Counted from the whole stretch's first letter, positions 10,604-58,676 are shown. The stretch is 63,612 nt of DNA, filler included, from Lenisia limosa (GCA_001655205.1; 15 parts of 15 records of this genome joined end to end with filler, not necessarily neighbours in it); one strand, 5' to 3'. Numbers and translations are program-made. The notes: generated by a model not told the origin, from the letters alone.

Positions 10604-10703
10604 NNNNNNNNNNNNNNNNNNNNNNNNNNNNNNNNNNNNNNNNNNNNTTAATTAATTAANNNNNNNNNNNNNNNNNNNNNNNNNNNNNNNNNNNNNNNNN
10701 NNN

Positions 10704-13194: not shown

Positions 13195-13392
13195 NNNNNN
13201 NNNNNNNNNNNNNNNNNNNNNNNNNNNNNNNNNNNNNNTTAATTAATTAANNNNNNNNNNNNNNNNNNNNNNNNNNNNNNNNNNNNNNNNNNNNTTTCGA
13301 TGAAGAATATTGGTGTAAGTAGTACAATTGGAAAATTTAAGCCCAAAATCAACTCTATTGGCTAACAACACACGAGGGCTTATAACAACAAG

Positions 13393-15541: not shown

Positions 15542-15770
15542 GGTGGTAAAGAGTTTCGATCCAAAGGTCAAGATTTATCAACTATCTGCTATTCCAATAC
15601 AGTATATTATGTTATAATATTTCACAGCAGAAAGAGGGAGAAAATCTGAAAATTTGGGATAAAAGCTATTCGAATACATTTACAACCCCAGATCAGCTTA
15701 CTATTTATGTATATTTTTGTCAAAAAATGAGAGAAGAAAAGGTTATTGTATACTTGTCAGGATTTAAACA

Positions 15771-18700: not shown

Positions 18701-21541
18701 GGATGTAAATGAAGAGTTTTAGCATAATTATTACACCCCATTCCTCCTCAAATTAAGCCAACCTCCTCTCCAGAGGGTTGGAAGCAATAGCGCATTTTTG
18801 CTGATACTGCTGGTTCTTGAGGGCCCGGAGTCCTACGAGATAAAGAATTGTATCTCATTTCAATTCGGTTTTCAAAAACAAAAACCAGAATTCAACACAA
18901 TAAAAATATAAAAAAGTAAAATGAAAAGAATTACATAAACCCCGGCTTACATTACGGACTTTTGCTGTGTATTAGCAGAATGTTTTCTAAAAAGTTAATC
19001 CTTGGAGAGGAACACAGAAGTTTATGTAGCCGTACCTTGGTAAAAACACCCTCTTCTGTGAATATTAGAACTCTCATCATAATACTGATCAAATTCGTAA
19101 AACGTATATTATATGCAAATATTGCTACTATCCCCACCAAGCCAGATTTAGCCACAACCAACTTATAACTAGCCAAGAACCGCGCAAGGTTGCCGAAGTC
19201 TTCCGATGCAAGACTAAGAGCTGCCAATTGGGTGTGGAGGAAGAAGAAGCCCTCAGACTCGGCAGGGGTGTCTGCAGCATGGGCATGGAATGACACCGTG
19301 CTGATGGGCGAGTTCATATACTGTAAGGTGTGGTGAGACTCAATGTTGCGTTGATGCATAAAGAGCTATTTTGTGTAGAATGGTGAACATGATATATATT
19401 TTTACTACATACTAGTATGTGGGTCCTCAAAGCTCCGGACAGCATTCTAAATTCACCGGACACATCAAAACTCCCGGNNNNNNNNNNGGATTTATCGAGA
19501 AATTCAGTCTTTTTTCGAACCGAAGAAGCCCTAATGGTAAGGTGTATAACAAGGCTTCTGCTACTATGTCAAATAGTTAATCTGCATGGACCCCATGAGA
19601 TATGTGCTGGTCTTTTACTCTACAGAGAGGAAGTTGAGAAGATCGCTGGAGAGAAGTGGAGTGCAGCCAAATTTGAAGGTCCCAGATTCCAGGTATGAAT
19701 TCGTCTCATGACAGGAGGGTTGGATAAAATCTTTCGATGATGATTGCTCTTGCTCCCTTCTCGTTTGTCCGCGGTTCATGTTGCAGTCCTTCGCGCACAT
19801 TCTGTCTATGGTGACAAAGCTGAAGGTTACTACCCCTGGAAATGTCTTCACCAGGTATGCTTGGAGTAGTCTTTGTTTTCAATGAGATCCCATTTGAGTT
19901 TTCAGTGATATTGTTTCAATAGATGATGTACTTTTGATGGTGCGCACTCATCCAATATCTCTTTATCAGCGTGATGGTGGCTGGCTTCGGTCAGATTCTA
20001 TAATATCTCTTGTCAACGTAATTGAGTGGCCGGCTTTGGTCAGAGACAATAATCCAAAATCTCCTATCAGCGTAATGGTGGCCGGCTTCGGTCAGATACC
20101 GGCTATTTTTCTCATCTCTTCATATTTTTTATTAATTTATGCATGNNNNNNNNNNNNNNNNNNNNNNNNNNNNNNNNNNNNNNNNNNNNNNNNNNNNNNN
20201 NNNNNNNNNNNNNCCCCGCAGCAATGGCGTCAACGCAGTAAAGTGCTCACTCAAGGCCAACGATGGTTTCCTGTTCCCTCTCAAAAAGGTGGGAGTTGCT
20301 TCTAATTTATGCCAACATGGGGTAGTAGAGGATATCGGAGGGAGCCGACCTCGGAGGGAGCCGACCTCGTGTTATCTTTCATATGCTTTTTCCAGTTGTG
20401 ACATTTCAGAGTTTCTTCTTCCTCAACAAAGCCACCGAAGTTCGTTTCGACCAAATCTGTTTGGGGGCATGGTTAATGTTTAAAGCGGGAGTCCAATTAA
20501 TGGTGATTTTAAGGAAGTTCTCCTCAAACCCCATCTAAGTACTGTAACATGTAGTCAAAGCTGTTGTTAAACATGAGAAGCAGAGAGGAAGAGAGAGGAG
20601 CCATCCAACTGGGTTCAATTTATTTATTAAGCATTTTAAGAACAAAGAGCCCAGGCGATAGACTTCAGGAGAAACACACTGGTGTAGGATGATGAAACCT
20701 CCAGATTTAGTGCATCTTTAGCTTTCTGTTTCTGTTAGTTTGGCTTAGAATACTTACTTTTATTAATCAAGAGGCTTGTCATCACGTCAGGGCACTTTGA
20801 TCCAGATTTTCACTGAGATCTCAAAAACTACTCCCCTTNNNNNNNNNNNNNNNNNNNNNNNNNNNNNNNNNNNNNNNNNNNNNNNNNNNNNNNNNNNNNN
20901 NNNNNNNNNNNNNNNNNNNNNNNNNNNNNNNNNNNNNNNNNNNNNNNNNNNNNNNNNNNNNNNNNNNNNNNNNNNGTATAAACTAGGTTACAAAAATTAA
21001 TTAGACTTCCGCTTTTACACCTTCGATACCAACAGTTGATTTTGGGCTTTTTTTTATTTCATAAATTTTCCAATTTTGGACGTGATAACAAATTCAGCAC
21101 ACGTGGAGTTCCAAAGAGTGTCGTCAGTTTCAACCGGAGTCAATGTGTCCTTTGATCTTGCAATCACTCTCCACAAGTCCGTTGTCACCTTTACAAACAT
21201 TCATCGGTATGAATGTGACTTGCTGTTAATATGGTAACAATATGATAAGTTGCCTTTTTTTTTTCTTTTTTTTTTTTCACATGACCATTTCTGACGATTT
21301 TAGTGATGAGTATGACAATCTTGTTGAGTACTGCAAGGAAAGAGGTCTTCGTATCAGGAACTTGAAGGAGCTTGTAAGCTACTCGATATATTTGTGCCAT
21401 GTTTCTGTTTGCTCATTCTGCCTGTTATGTTTTGCCATTTTTATGCGACCAGGAAAACGCAGCCCGGGCCGCTGTGACTGAGGAGGTCGACATGGGGGGT
21501 GATGACGATGATGATGACGACCAGAGTGTCCAGATGTCCGA
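15771..21541 (+). CDS. SSRP1: FACT complex subunit SSRP1/Pob3; many introns, 3' truncated
   Basis: EGWNFGEIK; EMRFFVP; TYRGRFDIEF..RLFVLP; ICVV|ASVEPPLRQGATQYGHIV; LSMVTKLKVTTPGN; AVKCSLKANDGFLFPLKK; SFDLAITLHK..FTNIHR|DEYDNLVEYCKERGLRIRN; then an acidic tail. Motifs are in the same order as in SSRP1. Confidence 0.92.
16430..16670 (+). mobile_element. Family B intronic repeat in SSRP1, ending at a 3' splice site
   Basis: GGGATGCGGTGCTGCAAAAGCGACTGGTCTGGGCTTTGTTTG..TTATAACCCTCATGTGTTG..TTTTACTCCCCC..TTTTACCCCCTTCCCCCAG. Confidence 0.75.
17292..17405. repeat. Tandem repeat, ~38-bp unit x3 (ATATCCCTTAACTCTTTAGGACATTCACGTTTGTGAAT), in an SSRP1 intron
   Basis: Directly visible. Confidence 0.85.
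18170..19360 (-). CDS. Opposite-strand multi-exon gene fragment lying inside the SSRP1 span (nested gene or mis-scaffolded contig)
   Basis: Exon-like pieces YMNSPISTVSFHAHAADTPAESEGFFFLHTQLAALSLASEDFGNLARFLASYKLVVAKSGL, GLRALKNQQYQQKCAIASNPLGEE, YRNEALSRMSDIAHSRDK. Bracketed by 10-N gaps at 18159-18168 and 19478-19487. Confidence 0.4.
19950..20125. repeat. Family C interspersed repeat, two partial copies in an SSRP1 intron
   Basis: ATCAGCGTGATGGTGGCTGGCTTCGGTCAGAT..TTTTTCTCATCTCT; its reverse complement matches the 23625-23715 copy. Confidence 0.6.
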
Positions 21542-22094
21542 NNNNNNNNNNNNNNNNNNNNNNNNNNNNNNNNNNNNNNNNNNNNTTAATTAATTAANNN
21601 NNNNNNNNNNNNNNNNNNNNNNNNNNNNNNNNNNNNNNNNNTCATTATCAATACATAATAGAATACTACATAAGTCACTCCAAGGAAGGCCTATTCTTCA
21701 ATAATGAAACTGCTTTCCGAGACAACTTCATTTGAACCCTGCTTTATCAAAACTATTCGTCATTGAAATTTCCTTCGTTTTACGTCTTTTTTTTGTTGTT
21801 GTTGTTTGGGGTTTCAGATTCTTCGGTTCCTGATACCTTTACGCCATTTCTTCATCGAAATTTTCTTCTTTTTACTGGGATGCGGTGCTGCAGGCAACTA
21901 GCCTGGGNNNNNNNNNNNNNNNNNNNNNNNNNNNNNNNNNNNNNNNNNNNNNNNNNNNNNNNNNNNNNNNNNNNNNNNNNNNNNNNNNNNNNNNNNNNNN
22001 NNNNNNNNNNNNNNNNNNNNNNATCAGCCAACAGATGATTTGGGGTTTTTTGTTTCATTAATTTTCCAATTTTACTCCCTTCCCCAGTCCGACT

Positions 22095-24200
22095 TTCACT
22101 CCATCCTCACGGTCGCTGCTGTCGGATCAGAAAGACAGGACTTGTGCAATGGCGGGGGTGCCAAAGTCGCTGTGCGTATGTCACAAGGGTTCCTAGCACA
22201 AGGCATTATGTGTGTGGTAGTGGTTCTGAGTACGTCGCTATGTGTGTGTAGGGTGTTGCTAGGGGATTTTGACTGGGGAGTTGTAACAAATCGTATTAAC
22301 TGGTATTAAGATCGTGTGGATTGATGTTTTAGTGTTTTTCTTATTATTATGCAGTTTTTTTCTGAACCGTTTTTAAGAATCTCAAAACAAATCATATGTA
22401 TGTTGAAATGAGAAATAAAATTTTATTACTATAGCAATGAAAAATAAGGTCAAGTAAAATAGGTATCTGGCCGAAGCCGTCCACACCGATGCAGCTCAGA
22501 GATATTGGATATTGCAAAACACCTGTTTGAAGGATATCAGCACCATATACATTTTAAAACACCACCAATCGTGGTTAGGAACAAGAAAAACAAGGAATTA
22601 TACAGCCACATACAAACACAGCACTACACCAACACCTCTTCAGTCGATTCCGACACCATTTTCACGGTTTTTCGTCTCTTGAAGAAGCTCTTCTTCGAGT
22701 CCAGCACCAGCTCATCAAACTCCTTTGCGAGCTGTGGAAGCTGTGGGGGGGGGGGGTAAAANNNNNNNNNNNNNNNNNNNNNNNNNNNNNNNNNNNNNNN
22801 NNNNNNNNNNNNNNNNNNNNNNNNNNNNNNNNNNNNNNNNNNNNNNNNNNNNNNNNNNNNNNNNNNNNNNNNNTTCTCCAACAACCAACCTGTTTAATAG
22901 TCTCAGAAGGCACCATAACAAGCATTCGCCGCATCCGAGAGCCTTCCTCGCGAATTTGCGTCAACTTCGGCGAAATTATACCCTCTACACAGGTCAAATT
23001 ACGCGCTACCAACATAGATCATAGATCATAGATCATAGATCATAGATCATAGATCATAGATCATAGATCATAGATCATTGGTGATTTGATAACTCCCCCT
23101 CCCACTGTATCCGACCGCGAAGAAAAGACACAAAGAAGATGTCAAGAAGATTTGCTGGGAGTAAGTTGCGTTGAGCGCTTCTTTGAACTTGTCCTAATCG
23201 AGTCAGTAGGATGTTGTTATCATTTTGAAGGTCTCTCTCCCCACTCCCCATATTTCTATACTGATGGTTATTACAGAATAGATACACTTTTGGGAGCTCA
23301 GAGAAGCTTAGCGCCAAATAGGGTTTCATGGCACCAGCTTCACTCTGATCCAGAAAATCACCGAATTTCTCGATAAATCATCAATATATTGCGATAGTTT
23401 TCGATCTTTAGTTCTGGAGTGAAGCCCATCAAGTCCCAATAATTTGAGTACTACAGAGGCAACGGAATCACACCAGTTAAATCTTCAATACTTATCTTTT
23501 TCGTCCAAAAATTAGAGTTTTGAGGAAACATACCAGGTAAAGCTGTGTCAGAGTCTTCATGCCAGGGAAGAGGTAGTTTTGAGTATTGGTCCATAGAAGC
23601 CTGATAATTGAGCTATTGATGATATGTAGAGATGAGAAATAAAACAAGGTTGTATCTGGCCGAAGCCATCCACACCATCACGCTTATATACTAATTAACC
23701 AATCATTTGCCTTACAACTCTGTGTCACAGCTTTCTGCGTGCCTCGTAGTAGTATTTATGATATAGAGATGAGAAGCGGTACAGCAATACCCACGTAATA
23801 TTACGTTCATAGAGCAAGCAAGGGGGACTCAAAGCTTACGGGAGATATTGTGACGGTTGGGGGTGAGTCGAGTTGTACGGCGCCTCAAGGAAGTAGCCGG
23901 ATGCAGAGTCCAGCATCATTCGACCGGTTACTGTAGGTGACGGATGTGAGAGAAGGGGATGAGGCTATTGTTAAAGGGTGAAAGGGAGTGCATGTTATAC
24001 ACATTATACACAAAATACACATTATCACATTTTCCTTAAGATACTCCTCCCACATTCAAGACCATATATTAGACGAGCGTTGACACCAAGTAGTTCGTCA
24101 GGCACATCTGAACTGTCAAAGCAACCGCATGAAATTATCAATATTATGTGTTTTTTCTATTTTGTCTCTTTTCAAAAGCTGCTGGCTCATAATATTTGAT
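22095..24200 (-). CDS. Probable multi-exon gene of unknown function
   Basis: Exons with C-run+AG acceptors on the minus strand, e.g. LPQLAKEFDELVLDSKKSFFKRRKTVKMVSESTEE (22636-22740) and VTGRMMLDSASGYFLEAPYNSTHPNRHNIS (~23840-23935). Strand of some pieces is ambiguous. Confidence 0.35.
23013..23078. repeat. Perfect 7-bp microsatellite (CATAGAT)n, about 9 copies
   Basis: Directly visible. Confidence 0.95.
23625..23715. repeat. Family C interspersed repeat (reference copy)
   Basis: AGAGATGAGAAATAAAACAAGGTTGTATCTGGCCGAAGCCATCCACACCATCACGCTTATATACTAATTAACCAATCATTTGCC. Other copies at ~22455, ~27180, ~31180 (rc), ~32985 (rc) and ~40820. Confidence 0.75.
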
Positions 24201-24424
24201 AAGAAAATAATTGATAAAAAAAATTCATGAGGAAAGCTTTTAAAAAGAAAAAAAAAACAGAACTAAATTATCGGCTCTGCTGAGAAACTATAACTGGCTC
24301 AGCTAGAGCTAGTGATCTAAGCCANNNNNNNNNNNNNNNNNNNNNNNNNNNNNNNNNNNNNNNNNNNNTTAATTAATTAANNNNNNNNNNNNNNNNNNNN
24401 NNNNNNNNNNNNNNNNNNNNNNNN

Positions 24425-27400
24425 TCTTGATGTCCGACACTTCCGTTGCCGATGACACGTGCATTGAACGCATGTCTGTCAAATAGCCCTTCGGGTCCAC
24501 AACGGTCTGCCCAGTGACTTGGTCACCGGCCTTGTCAAGGTTCACGGAAAGCATCTGTTCACGTGCCTGTCCGACAGCCGTGAGGTTTTGCTCTAGAATG
24601 TCAAGACGTAAATGCCAAGTTCTGGAGGAAAACTAGAGGACTGTCACATTGTTATGACCATGTTCTCAGAATATCCCAATTTGGACTTGAAAGTGCTTTA
24701 TCCCCCCCCCCCCCNNNNNNNNNNNNNNNNNNNNNNNNNNNNNNNNNNNNNNNNNNNNNNNNNNNNNNNNNNNNNNNNNNNNNNNNNNNNNNNNNNNNNN
24801 NNNNNNNNNNNNNNNNNNNNNNNNNNNNNNNNNTCACAGCGTTTCTAAATGCATCCGTGGTTAGTAAGGCTCCGGACAATTTTTTGACAAAATTAATTTC
24901 AAAATTTGAAGTCGGACATAGTGCAACGAGAACCCTAGTTCAGACATTTTAATTTCTAATTTTGTAAATTAATTCTCTCAAAAAATTAATTGCACGGAGC
25001 CCTAGTGGTTAGGCATAAGGCGGAATCAAAAGAACACTGTATATTTTTTAACAACAGTCACTTAAAAAAGACAACCCAACCCTATTATTAGATGAGCCTG
25101 GCATTATCATCTTCAACCCCGTTCTGCATGTTATACAGCTAGTATCCCCATGTATTCTTTTGTATCCCGAGATTGTTATTTTAACAGTCTTTATCCGACT
25201 TTAGGGAAGTCCTACTTACTCAGATTAGGAAAACCCACCTTTTTCGTTTCACGTGAGTCGATGGTGTTGACTTTCTCCTTCTCCAGTCTTGCAGACTCGA
25301 GCAAATTGTCGGGAACCGCGGAGAACCTGGATGGTCAGAAGCAATGCTCCAAACTGTTTGATTTTTTTTTTGCAAAAGAAGAAGTCATTTCTCATTTGCA
25401 TTGTATCGAAATACTATTTACAACAACAACAATAATAATAATAAACAAAATGAAAAGAAAGAGAGAAAGAAGGAAACAAAGAAGGAAACAAAGAAGGAAA
25501 CAAAGAAGGAAAGAAAAAAGGGGAAAAGAGAGAGAAAGAGAGAGAAAGAGGCTTACACCCCCCACGATTCGTATTTGATTCGTTTGATGCTGCCATCGGA
25601 GGCGACGGGGATGTTGTTCCACTCAGTGTGGCTTACTAAAACGTAAGAAAAGACAAGAAGAAAAGACACAGGTCCAAGTCTAATGTTCACTCCGATTTTG
25701 AAAATGACCGAATTTCTCGATAAATCCTCGAAATATATCGATAATTTACCTTAATTTTGAAGAGTGAAGCCCTAATAATAACAAAATAGAAGACCCTTAA
25801 CACACCATCAGTCAGGTTTCTCTTGAGGTCAGAAAACTGGGCCTGGATGGTCTGTTCTTCTTCCATTTGTTTGAGGTCGGCAAGGCTCTCTTGCCCAGCA
25901 ATTTTGTTCTTGTTCTTCTGTAATAGTGAGCGAAACTGTCTCGTTTGCAAGATCGGTAAGTTTTAAGGAGATACTGTTAGGGCTTTCCTTCGATCCCTAA
26001 AAAGACTGAATTTCTCGTTGTACCAGTCTTTTTGGGACTGCAGGGAAGTCCTTGATATCATAGAGGAAAGCAACCTATTGACGATGGTTTGGTAGTTGTA
26101 GCATATTGTGAGATAAAATGCGTGAGAGAAAGGACACGCAGTACGCACTAATGTAGCATTCTAGAATAAGACAGAATAATGAACTTTTCATTTTTGAATC
26201 TTATAATTCTCGGATCTGTGTTCTACATAACCAACCAGCCGCTTCTTAGTGTCCATGTACTCGTCAATAGCCTCGTAAATACTGTCTGCTTCCTTGTCGT
26301 CGGTATCGTAGCTACGAGGTTAGACTATAACTCCCAATTAGTGCTTCGCTTCCATTCGAAAAAGACTGAATGTCTCGATAAATCCTCAAAAATTATCGAT
26401 ATTTTGTCTTGTTCGAACCGAAATGAAGCCCTACTCACAATGAATTACATAAAATTTTTTGGCTCCACTCCAGTACCAAAAAGACCGACAAAATATCGTT
26501 AATTATCGAGGACTATCAAGAAGTCAGTAATATTTGTTATCGAAGTGAAGCCCTACATACACTCTGTCATCTCAAATTTTGATCCCTTATCATTGCTATA
26601 ATAGCTTCGTGGTAGGCTTGGGAAGAGTTATGTAGAATATTTATTATGTGTGCATACAAGGGGCTTGACTGCAATAAGTGAATTGCATCCTATTAGAAAA
26701 GTGACTCACTCCCCCCCTCCAACAACGCCAACATTTTTGAGTGGAAAAGTGACCCCCCCCCCNNNNNNNNNNNNNNNNNNNNNNNNNNNNNNNNNNNNNN
26801 NNNNNNNNNNNNNNNNNNNNNNNNNNNNNNNNNNNNNNTTTTGAGTGGAAAAGGGACTTGGCGTCATCGAGACTGGTGATTTCACGTCCGTCCTGATCCA
26901 TGCCCAAACCCTGCTGCTCGGCGAGTTTCCTTTCATTCTTCTCCTGGAAGGCTCTGCAAAGGGTCAGGAAAAGAGAAGTAATAGAAGGTTGGCTCTGATT
27001 GCAAGCTAATAGTATTCTATTATAATAATATTAGAAGATGCAATATGCCCTCGAGATTTTTCGAAAATTATCCATTTTCGGGGTGAATGAAAGCGTGTTT
27101 AATTTCTCATCTCTATATAGTATCTCATATATCAAATACATATGTATTCTGACACTGAGTTACCAAGTAATATAGCTATAAATGAGAAAAAAAAAAACAA
27201 GGTTGTATCTGGCAGAAGCCATTCACACCATCACGCTTACAGGAGATAGTGGTTATAGTGCTATACTAATTCAATTCATCATTTGCCTAAATACATACAA
27301 GATGATATGATATAGTTCTAGGATGTGCAATAAAATGGTTGCATTTGGCCAAAGCCATCGACATCAGGGAGGGACTAGATCCAACCTTTTCCATTTGTCT

Positions 27401-45339: not shown

Positions 45340-48300
45340 GCGCGTTTTGTTGGAAGCAGTGCTGTTCACTTCACAGGTTCAAACTACGCTTACACCACAT
45401 ACTACGACAACTACGCCTATGCTATGGCAACTTCGTGGGGGAGGAGGGTCCAACCTATCTTCCCTGTTTCTGTAGTTAGTCTCATTGGACAATAGCCATC
45501 AAATTTTCCGTCACCCCCCCCCCCCNNNNNNNNNNNNNNNNNNNNNNNNNNNNNNNNNNNNNNNNNNNNNNNNNNNNNNNNNNNNNNNNNNNNNNNNNNN
45601 NNNNNNNNNNNNNNNNNNNNNNNNNNNNNNNNNNNNNNNNNNNNNNNNNNNNNNGGTGGATGAGCGTCAATCATTACCGCGACAAATGGGGCAACCTCAA
45701 CTACCTAACCGGCAACTACAGTAGGTTGTCCGTTTACTAGCCACAAAGAACTGAGCACATCAGCGTCTTACTGATTTTTAGTCTTCTGTCACGGAGCCAC
45801 GGAGCTGTCATACCTCAACTTCTGTGTGTATCGCTACTACGACTTCCAAATTGTTGTTGGAGGCAGCGGCTTCGACACCAACTTCAGCGTTCAGGACAAG
45901 GAATGGCACCACTACGCTATCACCTTCGTGGGTCGCTTCCCTTCTCAATCCTTACTCACTCTGTAGCATGCTGAAGCCGGAATCCTTGAGTTCTACGTTG
46001 ACGCTGTGAAGGTCTATGAAGGCACAAGAACTAAACGTGGGCATGGTAGCTGTTTTGACTTGACTTCTTCGCTTTTTACCCTGTTCACGGTTATTAGGCT
46101 ACATCGGTGAAGGACGCTTCTTCCTAGGAGCCCGGCCGTATAACGCCGACAGTGTTCTCCTCGACACCGCCTCCAGTCACAGCTACGGAAGTGGGGGGGT
46201 CACAGCTACGGAAGTGGGGGGTATTTTTTAAGGTTTTTTTTCAAAAAAAAAAACAGGCCCACTTATCACCTCCCCCACTCCCCCCAGTCTCCATTGACGA
46301 CCTTCGGATTTGGAGCACTATCAGACGTCAGGACCTTTTCGAGAAGGAGTTGGAGCGAAAACTCTGCAGCGACTGGGGCAATGAGGCTATTCTCGACCAA
46401 ACCGGTGCGTTGTCGTCATATACTACAGTTGACCCTTCTCTGCTGCTAAACCCCACAGACCTGTACGCTTCCTTCAACTTCGAGGATATGCCTGAGGAGC
46501 CGCCCACACCAGTGAAACTCTGGTTTGATGAGCCCCTTTATCAGAACGCCAGCAACACTAATGCTACTCTCTACGTAGGGGGCCCTTTTTCTACTTATTC
46601 TTCTTATAGTACTTATTGCTCTCTTTTTTTGAAGCTTTTTCCTGTTTCACCCACATTTATGGTCTCAGGACGGAACATACACCTTTGAGATGACCCCTGA
46701 AACCGTGCCCGAGTTTGCCAACGTCACTCTCACCAACGCCGGCTTTGTCATTGAGTTCGACTTCTTAGTCAATGTCAGCGACTCGAGTGGGTGCTTCCGA
46801 CTGCTATCCGAGTTTCAACCGTTTTGATGTCTATACTCTTTTGTGTCTTTATGTGATAGTTGTTCTCTGTTGTCCTTTATTTCTCACCATCAGGCAATCG
46901 CTATTTGATGACGTCACCGGACAACCCATGGGGCCACATTAGAATGTACCTCCGAAGCAGACGACTCTATTTCTACACAACGTGGGGGGTTGATAATTAT
47001 GATACTGCGTTCCATAGCCCCATTTCTACACAGATTGAATGAGGTATCAGCTGTTAAATTCGGTTCCATCCGTATTGATACACCTTTGCACTCATCTACC
47101 AGGCAAAACAAGTACACTGCACCTCTGGTCGTTGGCAACTGGTACCACTACAAATGCGTGGTGAGTGTCTCTCTTTTCTTGTCTCCTGAACGGCTTATGC
47201 CTTTCTTTCACCACGACTTATCCACAAGATGCATCATCTTGGCGATATGGAACTGTTTCTCGATGGAGCTCTCTTTGTAAGCCAATCAACACCATATAAA
47301 CCTACTTTACGCTCCTGTCACCCCCCAGGCGACAGTGCCGATGACACTACCCTCAACAACGTCGAGCTTCAGATCAGGGCCAAGGCACTTCACATTCCTC
47401 CAGCACTACTCCAGCACTCCTTACTATGTGAGCCTCTATACGATATCGTGACCTTATCCGCCCTTGCGAACTTACCCCCCCCCCCCCNNNNNNNNNNNNN
47501 NNNNNNNNNNNNNNNNNNNNNNNNNNNNNNNNNNNNNNNNNNNNNNNNNNNNNNNNNNNNNNNNNNNNNNNNNNNNNNNNNNNNNNNNNNNNNNACGCAT
47601 CGGTCATTAAGGACAGCATGCCCGGCGAGAACCATCTGTACCCTGTCGGGTATGTGAGTGGATCTTTTTACAGCCCATCGAAGCTCAAAATCACCAAAGC
47701 CTCTTGAACCGTTCCTTATAACTAGGGATTCCCTACGGTCCCAAAAAAGACTGAATTTTCTCGAGAAATCCTCGATAAATCTTGATACTTGACCGGTCTT
47801 TTTCGGACCGGAGGGGAGACTTCTAACCCCTCAGACGTGGCGGCGGAGGCTCAATCGAGGCTGTTGCTCCGCTTATGTCGGACTCCTGTGGTGTTCCCAC
47901 CTGGGAGGGCAGGCTGTGTGACGACCCGGTATGCCCGGACACTGGGGCTTAATTTCAACGCAGGGCGTCACATGCGGCTTTGTTTTGCTATTATCAACCC
48001 TCATGTGCTGTCAGCTAACAGAGTTGATTTTACTTTTTTTTATTATTTCATAAATTTTCCAATTTTACGCCCCTTCCCCCCAGGTGTGCCACGAACAATG
48101 CCACGCGACAATGGGCCGCTGCGACCTGCCGGGTGAGTGTAAGTGCGTCAACGAGTACGTCTCAGGCGAATTTTGTGACACTGCAATCTGCAAGTGAGCA
48201 CCCGGGTACTCATTTGTTATCCGATACTCGAGGCACAATTGACCTCTGAATGTGGATGTGTTTTACTCCTTTCAGGGATGGGTGCAAGGAAACTCACGGA

Positions 48301-51300
48301 CACTGCACGGACAGTCCCAATGACTGCATGTGTTACAACGGTGGGGGATAGTGTCGCATTACACTGCTCTCATTGGGCTTCAGAAGATAACAAATCCATT
48401 ATGTATATGACGATATGATATTGATAGGGAGTCACTCCGAACGAAATAGACAGGTAAAATATCGAAGATTTTTCGATCGGAGTGAAGCCCTAGATATTGA
48501 CTATCACATTGTGATCGAGAAAGGCTCACTGTTTAGGATGGGAGGGAGAAACCTGCAACATCGACGCATGCATGCAGCTTGGTGGGTGGCGTGCTCTGGC
48601 CATGACATCATAAATGGCAATTCAACTTAGGATGCGGTGTTGCAGAAGCGATTGGCCTGGTCTTTGTTTGTTGTTATCAACCCTCGTGTGTTGGTCAGCC
48701 AACAGAGTTGATTTTGAGCTTTTTGTTTCATAAATTTTCTAATTCTACTTCCCATCTACCAAGGCGCAAATGGCAATTCCTTTCCTCTAACTAGGCAGGA
48801 ACGGCTCGCGAGTGTCTGTCTACTACAGAGTTCCCATCGTGCGGCTGGTGCATGACCAGCGCTGATCCGGACCAACATTGTCGCAATGGTGACGCCGATG
48901 GACCCGTAAGCGCCCCAGGTGTCAATATGATTTTTTCCATTGTAGCAAGTGCCAATATGATTTCTTCCATTGTTGCCAGGGCTTCACTTTGGTTGGAAAA
49001 AAGACTGAAATTTNNNNNNNNNNNNNNNNNNNNNNNNNNNNNNNNNNNNNNNNNNNNNNNNNNNNNNNNNNNNNNNNNNNNNNNNNNNNNNNNNNNNNNN
49101 NNNNNNNNNNNNNNNNNNNNNNNNNNNNNNNNNNNNNNNNNNNNNNNNNNNNNNNNNNNNNNNNNNNNNNNNNNNNNNNNNNNNNNNNNNNNNNNNNNNN
49201 NNNNNNNNNNCATGTTGACAGTATCGCCTGCAACGGCACGTGGATCTTCTCCTCTTCCAAGGTCGTGAGTACTGAAAGTGGGGGGGGGGTAAAGTCGGGA
49301 TGATGCAACAAATAATGGCATAGTATGATTTGCTCTAATTCGAACAGGTTCGGACACAGACGTGCTGCAACCCGAACACACTGAGGTGTACCTGAGGCCA
49401 GGACAGGAACTCAACATCACTGTCGCTGTCGTTCCCATCCCCGTGCCTCTTGACCTGTACTTCCTCCATGTGGGAGGCTCTATAATTTATTTTCAGAAAA
49501 AGGGTTGATGAGCATTACTCACCCCCTTCCCCCCAGGATGTGTCAGGCTCTATGGCTGACGACATTTCGACTCTCCAAGCCCTGGCTAGCGACCTTGTCG
49601 AAAGGGTGCGAACCGAGCTGCAGAGCGACAGCGTGTTCGGAGTGGGCGCCTTCAATGAGAAGCCCATGCATCCCTTTGGAAGAACGTCAGGCTGCAACGA
49701 GGTGGGGGAAGGGGGTTGAGGTTACGAAAGTGCTGAATATCTGATGAATGCCGAAAAAGGTTTCGTTTAGAGGAAAGGAACCCTGAATTTGAAAGACCTT
49801 CATTCCTTAGGCGGACGAGTCTGTCGGCAGAGGCTGTGACAACGTTGTGTGGGAACCGAAGATTGCGCTTTCATCCGACTTGGACCAGGTACCTTTTTCA
49901 GAAATGTTGATTATCAATTAGAACCAATCCCATGAAACTGTATCAGCACTGTTTACCTCGAGTAGTTCACGGACGGTCTCAGTCAGCTCATCACGGACCA
50001 AAACAACGATACGCCCGAGTCTTCTCTTGAGGCTCTCTTGCATCTTGCCGTCGCCGGCACTGGTGGGAATCTTGAAGTCTACAATAAGCTAGTCTTTAAA
50101 ACCTGACAATATCTATCACGGGCTTTATGTAACTTTTCAGGCAAGGACAGCTGCAGTAACAGCTCCGAGCCAGCCTGTAAGGCCTGCGAAGATATGGTGA
50201 GACCAGAGTACGGTGCTCCTGTTCCTAAATATTATCACCATCATAAATAACAATCGTACAGGTGCAATGGAGAGAGGGTGCGCGACACATGACCCTCATC
50301 CTCACTGATGCTCTCTTCAAGGTTGGTTCCGCAGTAATTTGTGCCCTTCTCCATAAAAGGAAAGTTCCTATCAGGAGCCTTCCTCCATATAAGGAAAGTC
50401 ACCCTCCAGGTTGCTGGCGACGCCCAGCTTGGCATGGTCTTCAGACCCAACAACGGCGACTGCATTGTCGACGGCTGGCCACCCGGTGTGTTTTGTTCGG
50501 ACATTATGCTAATAAACACAACGCATGGTCACACCCTAGGTACTGGCGAAGACTACCCCACCCTCGGTCTTCTGCGAGAGAAACTGAAATTGAAGAACGT
50601 GGTTCCAGTCTTTGCAGTGACCAGCTCAGTGCTTCCAGCCTACGAGGAACTTGTGGACTTCCTCGGCATCGGCCATGTCAAAACGATCGAATCTGACGCC
50701 TCGGTATGGNNNNNNNNNNNNNNNNNNNNNNNNNNNNNNNNNNNNNNNNNNNNNNNNNNNNNNNNNNNNNNNNNNNNNNNNNNNNNNNNNNNNNNNNNNN
50801 NNNNNNNNNNNNNNTTGAAGTGGTGACAGAATCGTACAACACAGTGGCTGAGATTATCAAGCTTGCGAGGAATGACGAAGATGACGTTTATAACGAGGTC
50901 TGCTGGCAATGTCGTAAGATCTCAATAATGCTGACAGCGTTTGTTCCTTCACAATTGCCGTTCACATGTAACGCCCTAGATCAAGACCTTCTCCCCCGTT
51001 GCAGGATACACAGGAATCAAAACCGGCGACAGAGTCGAATTCAACATCACAATGCTCACTGATAGGTTTGAAACAACTCCTTTCACAATCAGCTGTTATC
51101 TGCTGCCAAATGACTGCTTTTCGAGTGAATAAGGCTGATGATTGTAGGACCACCCCGGCCTCGAGCAATGCTAAGGTCCTTGTTTTTGGATTCCCATCCT
51201 TCAGGTTCACCATCAACAGAGAGGTTAGTACCCCGTTAACCCCCCTGAACTGACCATGCAGCTTCTTCTGGAGTGCGAGACCAACAGCGCCTGTCCGGGT

Positions 51301-54300
51301 GGCGACTCTCCTGTCTGCTCCGGACAAGGCGTCTGCGACTGCGGAAAAGTGGGCTCCCCCCTTCCTGTTTCCATTACCCACGCCGCCATTGACATTTTAG
51401 TGTCTCTGTAACGACACGTACAGCGGATCACAGTGCGACTGTTGGGAAGCAGGACCGTGCGTCGATAACTGCAATGGTGAGCTTACGAAATGTCAATTTG
51501 CTTCGTTCCATTGTTTTGAGCCTCACGTGTATTTTGAGCATGATCTCAATGATATCGCAGGACACGGCGCGTGTGTCTGCCAGGAATGCGAATGCTTCGA
51601 CAACTGGTCCGGTGACACGTGTAACTGTACAACCGACATCAGTAACTGCATCGACAGTGCCGGCACCGTCTGCAGCGGCAATGGAGAGTGCGAAGTCAGC
51701 CAGGAACCCTGCCCACCTTTTTTGCAGCACTGTCTTTATTGCAATCATAACCGTGTAGTGTGGAGTCTGTAAGTGCTTCGAGAACTACGAGGGCGACACA
51801 TGCGCTTGTAGTACACAGGCTGCCCCCAACGGCTGCACTGACGCCCTTCATGGAACTGACGTGAGCTGTGGTGGAATGGCAGTCAGCTATGTGGTGCAAA
51901 GAGCCAAAGATCAGTTTTTCATAATCCTCTTCAGGTCTGCGGTGTTTGCCATTGTTTCGACCCCTACGGCGGTAGAACTGGTGGGTTCTAAACCCCGACA
52001 CATATCTATGATATGACACACATTCCTCCTGCTCACGACATAGGACAGCCCAATGATTGCAGTTGCGACTTAAGACCTTGTCCAAACGACNNNNNNNNNN
52101 NNNNNNNNNNNNNNNNNNNNNNNNNNNNNNNNNNNNNNNNNNNNNNNNNNNNNNNNNNNNNNNNNNNNNNNNNNNNNNNNNNNNNNNNNNNNNNNNNNNN
52201 NNNNNNNNNNNNNNNNNNNNNNNNNNNNNNNTTTAACTCCTCACAGGTAATGGCATTTGCGATTGCTTCTCCTGTAACTGGTAAGCCTATCTTTCAGTGC
52301 TATTCTGATACTGAAACTGTTTGTTGGTGTTATCAATTATGTCTCCCTCTCAGCACTGCCCCTTGGACTGGTGATGACTGCTCCTGTAACCCCTCCCTTG
52401 AATGCGGCACCGGCTGCTCCACCCATGGAGAATGCTCATGTGGAGTNNNNNNNNNNNNNNNNNNNNNNNNNNNNNNNNNNNNNNNNNNNNNNNNNNNNNN
52501 NNNNNNNNNNNNNNNNNNNNNNNNNNNNNNNNNNNNNNNNNNNNNNNNNNNNNNNNNNNNNNNNNNNNNNNNNNNNNNNNNNNNNNNNNNNNNNNNNNNN
52601 NNNNNNNNTAGTGCACCTGTGATGCTGGTTACTCCCACACCAACGCTACTGCCAATGGTATGCCAAGAGGGTAAAATCAAATTAAGATGGTTGTGAAAGC
52701 GATATCTGGTTCATCACTATCTTACCCTTTTTTATTATTATTATTATTTTTATTTTTTTTGACTGTTGTTTCCGTTTAGACTGCGGCTGCTCGCAGTTCC
52801 CATGTCCACGCTACGACGACCTAGAATGCGGTGGCAAGGGCACGTGCTCATGTGGCATGGTGAGCTTTTTCCTCTCATCTTCCCGCTGTTATGCCATATT
52901 CCTGTTAGAATTCCATTACTCCCCCCCCCCCCAGNNNNNNNNNNNNNNNNNNNNNNNNNNNNNNNNNNNNNNNNNNNNNNNNNNNNNNNNNNNNNNNNNN
53001 NNNNNNNNNNNNNNNNNNNNNNNNNNNNNNNNNNTCAATGCGACTTGCCCAATCGGCTCGAACGGCCAAGTCTGTAGTGGTGCGTGGAGGGGCTTTACTG
53101 ATAATATGACGGGATGCTTTCCTTCCTTGGCCTCACCATCAGGCAATGGGGAGTGCACCTGTGGAGAATGCGTGTGCAACCCTGCCTATGAAACGGAAGA
53201 CTGCTCGTGCCTCACGTCACCCTGCCAGGTACAGGGCTGTTGCTGGGAAACAAGGGTGACGGTGCACTCGACTAGTGAAGGTACTGACCCCTCAGAACGA
53301 CTGCAACAGTGGGACCAGCAATGGCGTCTGCGAGTGCGGCGAATGTCTCTGCAACGAGCCCTATGTGGTGTATGAGGAAGGCGTCTTCGTGGCCAACTTC
53401 TATGATCCTCCTCTCTACGACTGCTCGTGTGACCCTACTGGTGGGCTTGGCTACGAGTGCTTGTGATATGTTGGCCATTCTGGAGTGGNNNNNNNNNNNN
53501 NNNNNNNNNNNNNNNNNNNNNNNNNNNNNNNNNNNNNNNNNNNNNNNNNNNNNNNNNNNNNNNNNNNNNNNNNNNNNNNNNNNNNNNNNNNNNNNNNNNN
53601 NNNNNNNNNNNNNNNNNNNNNNNNNNNNNNNNNNNNNNNNNNNNNNNNNNNNNNNNNNNNNNNNNNNNNNNNNNNNNNNNNNNNNNNATGTAACGGTGTG
53701 TGTGAATGCCGACCGGGCGAATGGGGAAATGACAACTGCAACTGCAGCCTTGCCGCTTGCCCCAAGGTTGGTGGCTGCTCTTGGCTCTGTAAACAAAAGC
53801 CATGACCAACCCTGACTGTTCAGGGTGGGGACAATGATGACGAGTGCAGCGGCCATGGCACATGCGAGTGTGGCGAATGTGAGGGGAGGACTTTAATCCT
53901 AATCATCACAACTAACATTTTTTGTCACTTAGGCTTACCTATTAGGCAAGTGCGACCCTGGTTTTTCAGGCTCCAGCTGCGACTGCGAAGATGATAAGGC
54001 GTGTGACCCGGAATGCGGCGACAGAGGAGACTGCATCTGCGGCTCATGTGTCTGCAACGAGCTCTGGAGAATGCCCCAGGTTTGCTCAGCTTCGGCTGCG
54101 TGACTCACCTCCAGCATGGCTGCAACTGCTCTGCGGTGGCGTGTGAGTCGCATCTTGGTCTCACATGTGGCGGGCATGGAACGTGCGACTGCGGAACTGT
54201 GGGTGGACTTGCCTTATTTGGAATGTGGAACTGTAGGCAAATATGCCGCAATTGCCTTATTTGGAATGTGGAACTGTAGGCAAATATGCCGCAATTGCCT

Positions 54301-55641
54301 TATTTGGAACTCAGCCTGCCTCTGAGCACCCTCCCGAACCACTTATCCCCCCCCCCCTAGTGTGTCTGTGACGACGGCTACTACGGCGGCGCATGTGCTT
54401 GTCCCCTAACCTGTCCCGGCGAGGCCCCCACGAACTCGTCGACACCCTTCTGCAACGGACGAGCTGAGTGCATCTGCGGACGGTTTGGGGGTTTCACTGG
54501 TTCAACACTGAAATTACCGCAGCTCACCAATACCGCTGAAATTACAGCAGCTCACCAACTCAGATGCGGTACCTGCGACGCGGGATGGGAACACCCCACG
54601 GACGGCTCAGATGAAGCATGCCAATGCCCGTCATGCCCCACTGTGTCTGGTGCGGGCGAATGCAACGGCCAAACCTGCGACTGTGGAACTGTAAGCAAAG
54701 GCGCGTGTGCATGGCGTATCATTGTGTGATGACCCTCACCTCGCAGTGCGACTGTGACACAGGCTTCACTGGCGACGATTGCAGTTGCGATGAGAGAACT
54801 TACGCGTGTCCCGGCATTTCGGTTGACATCCACGGCGCCGTACTCGCCACCTGCAGCGGTCATGGCGTGGGTGGGGCCGAGTGAATAGCTTGTGATTAAA
54901 AGAATCCCTCAGTTGCCATTTGAACTCACTCTTCAGAACTGCACATGCGCCACATGCGACTGTGATGAGGGTTGGGGAAGCTACGACTGTTCGCTTTGCA
55001 TCGGCGACGACTGCAGTGACCCGTGTGCCTTGTTTTCGAGCTGCGACGACTGTGTTGCTAACGGCTGTGTCTACTGCTCTGTGGGTTCAGCAGTTGTTCT
55101 TTTGTTCCCGCAATGCGAACATTGACACGTATAATTCCAATAGGGTCTCTCAATGTGTTCTTCTGTTGATAGCGTCAACTGTGAATCTCCTGAAACTGAC
55201 TCAGAGGCTTGCCAGGCTCAAGGAATCGAAATCGACACTCGTGCGTCTGGCATTGATTACTTGCCACATAAAGCAACTGTTGCACTCTGACTTACCTTCC
55301 AGAAACTGTTGCCACCGGCGTGGGAGTGCTAGTGGGAATTGTCGGTGTGTCGGCTGCAGGCCTCATAGGGTGGAAGGTTTGCTTCGTTAATACATTGCTT
55401 GATACTTACACACCAGGCTGTTACCGCTGCACAAGACCAGAAGAAATGGCGAGACTTCCAAAAGGCCAAAAGAGAAGTCCAGTGGAACGCCAACGAAAAC
55501 TCCTTGTATAATGTGAGGGGGGGGGGCTATATTTGATCAACAATGTTCACAATGTTTGAAATGCTAACCTTTCAGTCCACAAAGGCAACCCCCACAGCCA
55601 CTAGCAATCCGCTCTATGACACAGATGCCATGGACGATTAG
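45340..55641 (+). CDS. ITGB: Integrin beta subunit with N-terminal LamG/pentraxin-like and EGF extension, PSI, vWA (beta-I), hybrid, about 15+ I-EGF, TM and NxxY/NPxY tail; 5' truncated, dozens of introns
   Basis: PSI: CLSTTEFPSCGWC. Beta-I: PLDLYFLH|DVSGSMADDISTL, FGVGAFNEKP, NNDTPESSLEALLHLAV, WREGARHMTLILTDALFK|VAGDAQLGMVFRPNNGDC, DYPTLGLLREKLKLKNVVPVFAVT. Repeated CSGxGxCxCGxCxC. TM: GVGVLVGIVGVSAAGLIGWK. Tail: ..WRDFQKAKREVQWNANENSLYN|STKATPTATSNPLYDTDAMDD-stop (55639-55641). Confidence 0.95.
47723..47819. mobile_element. Family A MITE in an integrin intron with 8-bp TSD (7/8 match)
   Basis: TAGGGATTCCCTACGGTCCCAAAAAAGACTGAA..CTCGATAAATC..TTTTTCGGACCGGAGGGGAGA, flanked by CTTATAAC / CTTCTAAC. 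Confidence 0.75.
48624..48767 (+). mobile_element. Family B element in an integrin intron, flanked by a 12-bp direct repeat
   Basis: GATGCGGTGTTGCAGAAGCGATTGGCCTGG..TTATCAACCCTCGTGTGTTGGTCAGCCAACAGAGTTGATTTTGAGC..CATAAATTTTCTAATTCTAC; AAATGGCAATTC at 48612-48623 and 48768-48779. Confidence 0.8.
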
Positions 55642-55724
55642 GTTTTGATACTCTTTCTGGGTTATTTTGATATGCTTTTCTTTCCTCTATATATAGTTCA
55701 ACTTTCTTTTGGGGGGTATTAGAA

Positions 55725-58340
55725 AGCCAGTCGATCCTGGTCAACAAAGAGCACATGACAACATATGAGATTGTATTCTACACTAAAGAACTTAGTATAC
55801 GAAGGACTGGTGGTATTTGGGAATAGCAACCCATATCATTCCACGATCGGGGGAATCCTGGGAGGCATAAGAGTTTACGAGCGACAAAAATGACAACAGA
55901 TGGACCACTCTTACAATGCCACCTGTGTTTTGCGCTTGAGAGACAAAACCCGTTTTAGTTGAGCCTGTCAAAACTGGGGCTAGGGTTAGCGAGGCAACCG
56001 ATAAGGACCATTTGTCAAAGATACCCCCTCCCCACCGATTTGCCAGCCTCCAAGGTCAGCCACACTCATGAAGAACACGAGAGGGACGTCATCAAAGGCC
56101 GTGTCGTAAGTGACCGTAACAGTGTCCTAAAGATTAACGGGGAATTCGTAGTCAAGGTACTCATGCACTCCCATCCCACTGTTGGCATCAGTATAGTTCC
56201 CGTCAGAGATCCTAGAAAATGACAAAGATGACACAAAATAGAAATACGTTAGCGTGTAAGAGGCAATTTCGACAGGATAGCCAACCAGGAGGAAGAAAGC
56301 CAGTGGTGAAGCAGGCAAAGTCCAGGAAATTGGTCTCGGAGCTGTGTGTTAATCGAGTGGAAAAAATGCTACTGCACCCCTCTGCTCACTAGTGAGGGTA
56401 TCTCCAAAGGTAAATTGTGTCCTTTGTTGAGAAGTCAAAGCTTCGCACCTGTATAGTAAAGGGGGTTCAATACTATCGGTAAAAGGCCAGTAACAGAACA
56501 CAACAGCTCAGAATTTTCCCACCTGGGGGGAGTTGGCGACAAAGGTTGGTTCGGTTGCTGTCACAAGGCAAGTGGGCGGTTCATTCATCGGTACAATACT
56601 GTAGGAACTTTCAGCTAAAATATTAAGCAAAGGACAAGCTCATTGTGCCACCCTCCCTCTTACGTAGTGTGATGGCTTGACGTCCACTCTGAAGTCGTTA
56701 AATGGGGGGTTGGATATCAAAAAATGGTTCACACTAGAAAGCATCCCTTCGTAACCTATAATAGAATCATAACTTCATCTTTGATCAATGATCACCCGGT
56801 GCGTTCCTTCATATCCACCCTAGCGACCAACATTAATCACAATTTTAGTGATTTTGTGGGATTTTTACCAATTTACCCAGTCCCTCCTACCCTCATCAGA
56901 GGGCAATATGCTGAGTCGGTTGCGAATGGTAGAAGCATAATGTCATAAACGGTTGTGCTTCCAGTTTCAGTCTAGAGAATAAATTATGCTGCAATAGTAC
57001 ACACACAATTCCCCCTAACATAAGTCTTGTCTAGACTCCAAATATAGAAACCAGCACTTGTAGCATTGATGACCATTGGGAAGATTGGACCAGTGGGATT
57101 GTGGGCAGTTACGAAGACGAGAGGTGTGGCGGAGTATTGCGTCAAGTCAATACGTGTGCGCCCCCCAGTTGCAGCCTGTGAGTGTAACTTTTTCTTCAGC
57201 AGGCTGCTAAACCAGCATGTAAGGATTNNNNNNNNNNNNNNNNNNNNNNNNNNNNNNNNNNNNNNNNNNNNNNNNNNNNNNNNNNNNNNNNNNNNNNNNN
57301 NNNNNNNNNNNNNNNNNNNNNNTGAATCTGGTTAAAACCAAGACAACCAAAGATTTCGTCAATACAGATAAAAGTAGGTTGATAGTATGCTAGAGAAAAG
57401 CCGTAAAAGCACTTGTAACAAAAGGTCTTACATTCGCCTATGTAAGTGCATTGACCAAAACTCCGAGGTAAAAATCTGGTTTACCAACCTGCTTTAAATC
57501 CAGAGAAAGCGTCGGTTTTGAGGAGATTAAAGAGTATAATGAGAGTAATATACTTCCTCGTACCACTCGAAGGAACTTGGGGGTCGGACAGGACAGCGAC
57601 GTCAAAGACTGAAGATAGGCGATTGTATTGGACGATTCAAGTATTTCCTGCAAAGTTGGTGGTTGAGAAGGGATGAAGGAAATCGTGTCAGTAACCTGTG
57701 AGACTTGGCTGATATTCTATTCTGACTAGTGATGCGTATCGTTTTGCATTTCTTCTACCCACATCATCCCNNNNNNNNNNNNNNNNNNNNNNNNNNNNNN
57801 NNNNNNNNNNNNNNNNNNNNNNNNNNNNNNNNNNNNNNNNNNNNNNNNNNNNNNNNNNNNNNCGAATTTCTAAATTGTAAGGGAAAGAATACCGTTAACC
57901 AAGTCCCTAAGGGATAAGAACGGTTTCAATAGCAGTTATACAGAGAAATGAAAAGAGAAACACAAACCCATATTTAAGAAGTTAACTTAGACATAACACT
58001 GTTCCCACTTTTGTGGTCAAATCATCTTCAACAATGGGCAACGCAGATGTCCTATCAAAGTGAAAAGGGGCAATTCCATACAAAGAGCAAACGAGAAGGA
58101 CAAATCCCATGACAATCTGTTCCCATGGCTACCGAATGTTTAAGTCAGACGCAATCGCCGATGGTGATACTGTAAAGGGACTACAAAGGTGAAGCTCTCT
58201 TACACAACGTCCAACAAGGCTGATTATTGGTCTTTTGATACCTTTTCTCCACTTTTCTGTTTCATCAACTCACCTTGGTGCCACACTTGCCGAAAGGCAT
58301 GCACAAATCAAGAAGATAAAAGCCTTCATCGTCATGATCC
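55725..58340 (-). CDS. Multi-exon probable secreted/membrane protein of unknown family, convergent with the integrin beta gene
   Basis: Signal-like MTMKAFIFLICACLS (~58290-58340); exons AATGGRTRIDLTQYSATPLVFVTAHNPTGP, IVPMNEPPTCLVTATEP, DTVTVTYDTAFDDVPLVFFMSVAD. Confidence 0.4.
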
Positions 58341-58676
58341 TAGAGGGAAAATATTAGCAAGTGTGATCAATCATAGTCGTTGAATTTGTTAATCATTAGG
58401 TCGAAAAACAAACACGAGTCTGCATTTGGAAGAAGGAATAATATTTCCACACAGTTAATATGGGTTGTTATTGTCAAAGAACAGGATCCCAAGTTGGTTG
58501 ATCCGTCGCATACAACATATTTGGGTCAGCTCGCCACGGGGTGGTGCCCTAAGGGTAAAATACTATACAATTATGGNNNNNNNNNNNNNNNNNNNNNNNN
58601 NNNNNNNNNNNNNNNNNNNNTTAATTAATTAANNNNNNNNNNNNNNNNNNNNNNNNNNNNNNNNNNNNNNNNNNNN

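Follow-up and report, generated by a model that had tools for sequence, protein, structure and literature searches.

The locus examined here raises the question of whether an integrin beta of the breviate Lenisia limosa (GCA_001655205.1) carries a second arm, made of LamG-like and EGF-like modules, ahead of its PSI domain in one and the same protein. The window, that is, the whole stretch of DNA that was analysed, comprises 63,612 nt, in which 15 parts of the genome are joined with filler; the genomic part of the piece concerned is window 45340-58576. The locus is multi-exon and eukaryotic, with a GC content of ~45-50%, and all exons discussed below lie on the + strand. An original prediction had described it as an integrin beta with a complete metal-binding head, an extra LamG and EGF module at the N-terminus and a greatly extended stalk. 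The module order of the present model is EGF-like repeats, a LamG-like unit, a weak second unit, three EGF-like modules, PSI, hybrid/beta-I, 16 I-EGF modules, a transmembrane (TM) helix and an integrin tail. The locus almost certainly encodes an integrin beta. The EGF/LamG exons and the integrin core probably belong to one gene and the same protein, as judged from the splice logic of their junction.

The integrin head was recognised by domain matches and by alignment. Two open reading frame (ORF) pieces matched the Pfam family Integrin_beta with 29.2 and 44.7 bits (cut-off 24.8); Pfam was run on unspliced ORF pieces here and below. Over its full length, the spliced head (440 aa) aligns with residues 42-490 of integrin beta-7 (ITGB7) from Latimeria (P0085; 775 aa), with 27% identity and an E value of 7e-43 pairwise, or 1e-40 when searched against the set of 124 hits. 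The PSI domain is encoded by exons 48799-48905 and 49211-49277, which gave a sub-threshold Pfam PSI match (E=0.0057) and align with the PSI of Latimeria ITGB7; the assembly gap 49014-49210 lies wholly inside the intron between them. The N-terminal half of the hybrid domain (49348-49469) was placed by alignment to P0085 and by the exon model. The beta-I (VWA) domain, supported by Pfam and alignment, is spread over seven exons (49537-49701, 49811-49888, 49966-50062, 50141-50196, 50262-50321, 50410-50485, and 50540-50703). The intron 50486-50539 (54 nt) coincides with a gap of exactly 18 residues in several alignments with homologues. The C-terminal half of the hybrid domain (50815-51223) comprises a first exon, which begins 7 nt within a gap and runs to 50913, and exons 51005-51065 and 51148-51223; it is supported by the alignment to P0085 and by an RNA contig.

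The predicted metal-binding residues are all present and align column for column with Latimeria ITGB7. The metal ion-dependent adhesion site (MIDAS) consists of DVSGS, the E of NNDTPE and the D of TDA; the adjacent site (ADMIDAS) is SMADD; and the synergistic metal-binding site (SyMBS) consists of the E of FNEK together with N-x-D-x-P-E. In the alignment, DVSGSMADD is matched by DLSYSMKDD (MIDAS/ADMIDAS), FNEK by FVDK and NNDTPE by NLDSPE (SyMBS and the MIDAS Glu), and TDA, with the MIDAS Asp, by TDD. The coordinates given earlier for DVSGS (49537), NNDTPE (50002-50019) and the stop codon (55639-55641) are correct. Before the TDA strand there is a Cys-rich insert of 18 aa. The PSI domain contains 5 Cys (not 7), and the first I-EGF module contains 7; these counts would be as a long-range disulfide from PSI to I-EGF1 requires.

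The head is followed by an I-EGF stalk (51262-55080, 24 exons), identified by motif count and by weak Pfam matches to EGF_integrin, I-EGF_1, and EGF_Teneurin. The stalk is 703 aa long with 138 Cys, and 16 I-EGF-type modules were counted, typically with 8 Cys each. The CXCXXCXC motif occurs in 13 strict copies and 3 variants, gap-hidden modules included. The earlier count of 15-16 modules thus stands at ~16, but the further modules expected in the gaps are already within this number. A membrane-proximal Cys-rich segment, seen as a sequence pattern, is formed by the end of exon 54937-55080 and by 55144-55240; it has a PSI-like Cys spacing, matched no Pfam family and was not recognised as Integrin_B_tail. 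The TM helix (55303-55376) was read directly from the sequence as VATGVGVLVGIVGVSAAGLIGW, then K, with a GxxxG inside, and its exon is phase-consistent with a 40-nt intron. Past the helix the sequence is AVTAAQDQKKWRDF, with no clear LLxxxHDRKE motif. The cytoplasmic tail (exons 55417-55512 and 55576-55641) matched Integrin_b_cyt with 23.5 bits (cut-off 23.4). Its motifs are a proximal W...NSLY and a distal NPLY, and it reads ...QDQKKWRDFQKAKREVQWNANENSLYN...NPLYDTDAMDD. The PSI domain, TM helix and integrin-type tail expected from the original prediction were therefore all recovered.

The original assembly contains gaps in this gene, which were closed with a second assembly. The 77-aa ORF product P0001, which is 100% identical to the beta-I ORF piece (phmmer), led to a SPAdes contig of 14,003 bp in an ENA assembly (L001). 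All 11 blocks shared by L001 and the piece are 100% identical; L001 has no N and reaches 1,347 bp beyond the piece on the 5' side. According to L001, the eight in-gene N-runs are really 49, 48, 137, 58, 52, 75, 46, and 140 nt long, all below the lengths of the N-runs. Independently of L001, DNA contigs of run X1 (Logan) gave 52 and 76 letters for two of the gaps, and the gap 53489-53687 is spanned by an RNA contig. The reading frame stays open through all eight gaps once the real bases are inserted; the gaps had hidden one complete exon (L001 9056-9093) and portions of six others.

Exons were chained by a program that enforces GT-AG introns, phase bookkeeping and stop checks, with codon and splice-site weights trained on hand-verified beta-I and stalk exons. 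The resulting model v2 contains 60 exons (median 93.5 nt) and 59 GT-AG introns (median 70 nt, range 35-245). Its coding sequence of 6,050 nt encodes at least 2,015 aa, followed by the stop, and is open at the 5' end. The introns share a signature of a donor with +5 G, a CTNAC branch motif 8-12 nt ahead of the acceptor, and YAG. Versions of the exon finder with flat or over-rewarded scores ran through in-frame introns and were discarded. One exon ending at L001 9519 (window 54049) was also dropped for a 30-nt longer one ending at L001 9549 (window 54079), which leaves a 35-nt intron; the longer exon was preferred because it restores the CxCxxCxC...W pattern and has a better donor.

The gene is transcribed, and it is spliced as modelled in the stalk. 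In X2, a polyA RNA run of the study that also produced the DNA run X1, 41% of the sampled words of 53688-55641 were found, and 0 of those of 49211-50709. The X2 contigs match the predicted junctions at all five testable introns, all of them in the stalk: 51224-51261, 51349-51400, the one that follows the gap-hidden exon L001 9056-9093 (before L001 9153), 53767-53823, and 53879-53945. One RNA contig spans 51165-51221 and is then spliced onward. Towards the 5' end, the RNA depth drops from 59 at 53.7 kb to 5.8 at 51.2 kb and is 0 upstream.

Upstream of the PSI domain, the first LamG/ConA-like unit lies at 45377-46574 (exons 45377-45434, one running from a gap to 45720, 45782-45927, 45967-46036, 46098-46190, and the start of 46288-46574). 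Its motifs occur in the order of LamG_3: AVHFTGSNY, TVEWWMSV, WHHYAITF, ILEFYVDA, FFLGAR, and SIDDLRIW. A 63-aa exon ORF of this unit matched Laminin_G_3 (PF13385) with E=0.07 and 13.7 bits (cut-off 27.6), and this was the sole Pfam family that it matched. In a protein-language-model atlas, 75 of 100 and 53 of 100 nearest named clusters fell in sets carrying Laminin_G_3 for two non-overlapping exons; LamG_1/2, sialidase-lectin and pentraxin clusters ranked behind. Unit 1 is therefore a probable LamG-like domain, as far as its motifs and matches tell.

A linker and a putative second LamG-like unit follow (exons 46288-46574, 46669-46786, 46894-46981, 47103-47160, 47229-47447, and one running from a gap to 47649); nowhere is the model less certain than here. 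The second unit (WYHYKCV...MELFLDG) had no Pfam match, and its atlas neighbours were noise. Self-alignment with unit 1 recovered only the WxHY...LxFxxDG stretch, which 21 of 500 shuffles equalled, and exon 47229-47447 has a weak coding score. Among ten N-terminal ORF pieces, Pfam at E<=10 returned nothing besides the single Laminin_G_3 match; PDB sequence searches with the two LamG-candidate pieces gave noise, and the LamG region matched none of 124 fetched proteins (blastp, phmmer). Two LamG-type units had been proposed here; the first is retained as probable, and the second found no support.

About three EGF-like six-cysteine modules then precede the PSI domain (exons 47835-47928, 48084-48193, 48276-48340, and 48537-48581), recognised by their Cys pattern and by good donor and acceptor scores. 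The EGF repeats claimed upstream of PSI are borne out by this six-Cys pattern at 47835-48581, with sub-threshold Pfam matches to EGF_DL_JAG (E=0.041) and EGF_2. On the 5' side, L001 adds at least 6 exons beyond the piece, mostly Cys-rich and EGF-like. The N-terminal module is larger than the piece shows, and at least 824 aa of EGF/LamG modules apparently stand ahead of PSI.

Whether these exons belong to the integrin gene depends on the junction between the last EGF exon and the PSI exon. A 217-nt intron (48582-48798) is proposed there. Exon 48537-48581, the last EGF exon, closes in phase 1 with a strong donor (GTGGGTGG, score 3.2), the phase is 1 on both sides, and the AG is preceded by a CTAAC branch motif at a distance of 9-13 nt. 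An in-frame TAG stands right before the PSI exon, which starts in phase 1 and therefore cannot be the first exon. Within ~450 nt upstream of PSI, no ORF starting with ATG was found that could be joined to the PSI exon through a usable donor or that would supply a hydrophobic signal; the best in-phase donor among these ORFs scored -3.0, and the resulting 15-aa peptide would lack a hydrophobic core. At 217 nt the spacer has the size of an intron, and half of it is filled by a repeat that also occurs in two other introns here. The two sides of the junction have a similar DNA depth (about 40-58 vs about 35-37). A signal-peptide-like ORF in the junction intron (MAIQLRMRCC...) was rejected as a candidate; its sequence is the high-copy repeat in translation, and it lacks an in-phase donor that could be used.

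Several points weigh against a single gene with this architecture. The Laminin_G_3 match of unit 1 is sub-threshold, and the atlas scores of 0.80-0.87 are leads only by the tool's own grading. The X2 contigs contain no RNA 5' of 51165, and the PSI/EGF junction and all N-terminal introns are predictions. The exon finder was trained on this locus, which makes its choice of frames partly circular. The first visible exon in L001 opens at an acceptor, and no start codon or signal peptide is seen in either assembly; the true N-terminus should therefore lie beyond both. No homologue of the same architecture was retrieved by phmmer or in the JGI scan. If exon 48537-48581 is left unspliced, it meets a stop 30 nt later (ORF ending ...LGGWRALAMTS), so an upstream gene could end near 48581. 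The high-copy repeat in the junction intron could in principle seed a chimeric assembly, and both assemblies probably share reads.

The alternative that survives best is that of two adjacent genes, namely a secreted EGF/LamG matrix-type protein followed by a canonical long-stalk integrin beta with an unrecognised first exon. It is regarded as unlikely, but it agrees with the in-frame stop ~30 nt past 48581 if the donor is read through, and with the X2 contigs, none of which crosses the junction. Non-metazoan obazoan integrin betas, those of breviates among them, have also been described as canonical apart from expanded stalks, with LamG3 never seen in obazoan integrin betas (10.1101/2020.04.29.069435). 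Against two genes stand the phase 1 start of the PSI exon behind an in-frame stop and the 450 nt upstream, in which no ATG ORF has a usable in-phase donor. Moreover, the 217 nt would need to hold a 3' untranslated region (UTR), a promoter, a 5' UTR and a signal-peptide exon, and the supposed upstream 3' end shows no RNA signal despite the 3'-biased polyA RNA. That the LamG/EGF exons lie in the integrin gene is thus probable, given the fitting phase, the intron-sized spacer and the lack of an alternative start or signal-peptide exon.

An assembly artefact, in which a LamG/EGF locus and an integrin locus were merged at the ~100-bp repeat 48667-48764, is very improbable. The repeat does have a word depth hundreds of times the baseline, and the X1 contigs (k=31) break at 48658/48710, many of them jumping between repeat copies. 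However, the join is identical in two assemblies, the depths on its two sides are similar (the values given above), the splice phases fit across it, and another copy of the repeat (47984-48084) lies between two exons over which a single EGF pattern runs on. That the locus encodes a VWA adhesin of the SibA-like or bacterial type, or is an integrin-like gene in decay or without function, can scarcely be credited and is already largely refuted: the best beta-I/hybrid matches are indeed cyanobacterial Integrin_beta proteins, the proximal NPxY is NSLY and PSI has 5 Cys rather than 7, but all 60 exons are open with no frame break, the metal ligands are intact, the stalk, TM helix and tail are eukaryote-specific, the gene is transcribed and correctly spliced, and Ig_SibA, RTX and cadherin repeats are absent from the Pfam matches of the ORF pieces.

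The single-gene integrin beta was then compared with known systems. The beta-I exon ORF was searched by phmmer against 1.84 billion representatives; besides its own 77-aa fragment, no close relative or annotated full-length protein was found. The matches were mostly cyanobacterial and other bacterial Integrin_beta proteins, together with a SibA-like protein of Mantamonas and vertebrate integrins. Relatives of the beta-I exon were also sought in JGI metagenomes, and none was found. The top beta-I and hybrid matches are cyanobacterial Integrin_beta proteins (Okeania, Oscillatoriales; P0008, P0112/P0125), with 31-39% identity and E down to 2e-53. These proteins are without PSI, I-EGF stalk, TM helix and tail, and have RTX, cadherin-like or bacterial Ig repeats instead. 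Over the head (48799-51223), the cyanobacterial matches beat the vertebrate integrin beta (27%, 1e-40) and extend into the hybrid-domain strands. SibA-like or bacterial adhesin repeats were found by Pfam on none of the ORF pieces; they are present in P0002-P0022 and P0093/P0135. As a side observation, the Mantamonas plastica protein (CRuMs; EukProt; P0135/P0093) is 1,838 aa long and has Ig_SibA and bacterial cadherin-like repeats behind its Integrin_beta VWA head; its architecture is thus SibA-like, although the species does not belong to Dictyostelia.

Latimeria integrin beta-7 is collinear with the present protein through PSI, hybrid, beta-I, hybrid, and I-EGF1, and shares the TM helix and the Integrin_b_cyt tail. 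The Lenisia protein differs from it in having 16 I-EGFs rather than four, no recognisable beta-tail domain, a shorter specificity loop, the 18-aa Cys-rich insert, the 5-Cys PSI and the N-terminal extension. In kind, the gene resembles those of breviates and apusomonads, with the arm added. Like the betas of breviates (Pygsuia/Lenisia), Thecamonas and Capsaspora, the present protein has PSI, conserved metal sites, many CXCXXCXC repeats, a TM helix and an NPxY tail; like breviate betas as reported, it has no clear LLxxxHDRKE motif. Long CXCXXCXC stalk expansions have been described in breviates, apusomonads, and Capsaspora, the obazoan integrin betas being otherwise canonical-looking, and the alpha legs of Pygsuia are equally long (10.1101/2020.04.29.069435). 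The greatly extended stalk is therefore of a kind already described. Obazoan betas are described as starting at PSI, whereas here PSI would be preceded by at least 824 aa of EGF/LamG modules, the relationship to the obazoan proteins being drawn from motif type only.

LamG3 and EGF-like domains do occur in the variosean 'Type II' integrin betas, which are 1,405-3,641 aa long and also carry vWD, Ig-like and cNMP domains; their MIDAS/ADMIDAS are hypervariable, Ig-like regions take the place of the EGF stalk, and LamG3 'has never been observed in Obazoa' integrin betas (10.1101/2020.04.29.069435). The present protein is very large, as Type II proteins are, and would also resemble them in joining a LamG3-type domain and EGF-like domains at the N-terminus to the VWA head of an integrin beta. 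In Type II, however, an EGF-like domain replaces PSI and the stalk is Ig-like, while this gene has PSI, an I-EGF stalk and canonical metal sites; the vWD and cNMP domains of Type II were not seen in it. The gene fails the definition of Type II because of its obazoan stalk motif, canonical metal sites and PSI, and the LamG fusion is probably convergent with, or independent of, Type II. As to whether the architecture had been described before, integrin betas with LamG3 and EGF domains are known in Variosea, but a canonical head with an obazoan stalk and a LamG/EGF arm may be new. Any novelty would lie in the probable fusion of a LamG/EGF arm to a canonical obazoan-type integrin. The chances are about even that this metal-competent obazoan-type beta with an EGF-LamG-EGF arm is the first such fusion outside Variosea, independent of Type II.

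The core most likely functions as in animals. It would pair with an alpha subunit, ligand would be bound at the top face of the beta-I domain via a Mg/Mn ion at the MIDAS, controlled by Ca at the sites beside it, and the tail, with its talin-type NxxY/NPxY motifs, would couple to talin and actin. The earlier suggestion that the receptor depends less on an alpha subunit is speculative and found no support. Animal integrin betas have four I-EGFs. By module counting, the Lenisia stalk is 4x the animal length and would hold the head several times further from the membrane. The N-terminal arm would extend from PSI close to the 'knee' and act as a further binding arm of a lectin-like or matrix-like nature, and the LamG lectin-like domain, flanked by EGFs, could provide a carbohydrate- or matrix-binding site.

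Integrins are central to the debate on the origin of animal cell-matrix adhesion. If the single-gene reading is true, the receptor is fused to kinds of domain that in animals belong to integrin ligands, laminin among them. It would be an independent case of extracellular matrix (ECM)-type domains joined to an integrin, and exon shuffling of ECM-type modules with integrins would already have been active in unicellular relatives of animals. Transcript-based surveys would also under-report N-terminal architecture, as the RNA here is 3'-biased and ends well short of the head. The gene would further offer a concrete construct to probe the cooperation of the lectin-like arm with the MIDAS. If there are two genes, an ordinary long-stalk protist integrin beta of the described kind remains.

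The introns of the locus have features of their own. In 16 of the 59 introns, GT is followed by a run of 6-14 G at the start, or a run of 6-12 C precedes AG at the end (for example, 50704-50720, 52447 onward, and 53489 onward). Most of the in-gene assembly gaps are located at or beside these intronic G- or C-homopolymer runs, which explains why the original assembly is fragmented. A dispersed repeat of ~100 bp (repeat families D6, D13, and D15) was found at the 3' end of three introns, with + strand copies at 47984-48084 (L001 3850-3950) and 48667-48764 (L001 4533-4630) and a partial third copy at L001 92-136. Two of the copies themselves provide the C-run and AG acceptor. The DNA word depth at this repeat is 7,554-25,567 vs ~30 nearby, which corresponds to hundreds of near-identical genomic copies. 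The repeat looks like an introner-like, intron-generating element.

Some minor observations were also made. Downstream of the stop, no ORF was recognised in 55642-58576 (~2.9 kb), for which no Pfam/Rfam scan or two-strand gene analysis was made. A second intronic repeat pair of ~80 bp, with 78% identity, is located at 47724-47802 (L001 3590-3668) and from 48978-49013 into a gap (L001 4844-4921), with a DNA depth of about 600-1,400 vs ~30. Tandem duplications of 43 nt x2, 36 nt x3, 24 nt x5, and 23 nt x2 are also present in introns, at window 54209-54294 (L001 9679-9764) and at L001 1-108, 382-525, and 2095-2139. The L001 contig terminates in the 36-nt tandem array.

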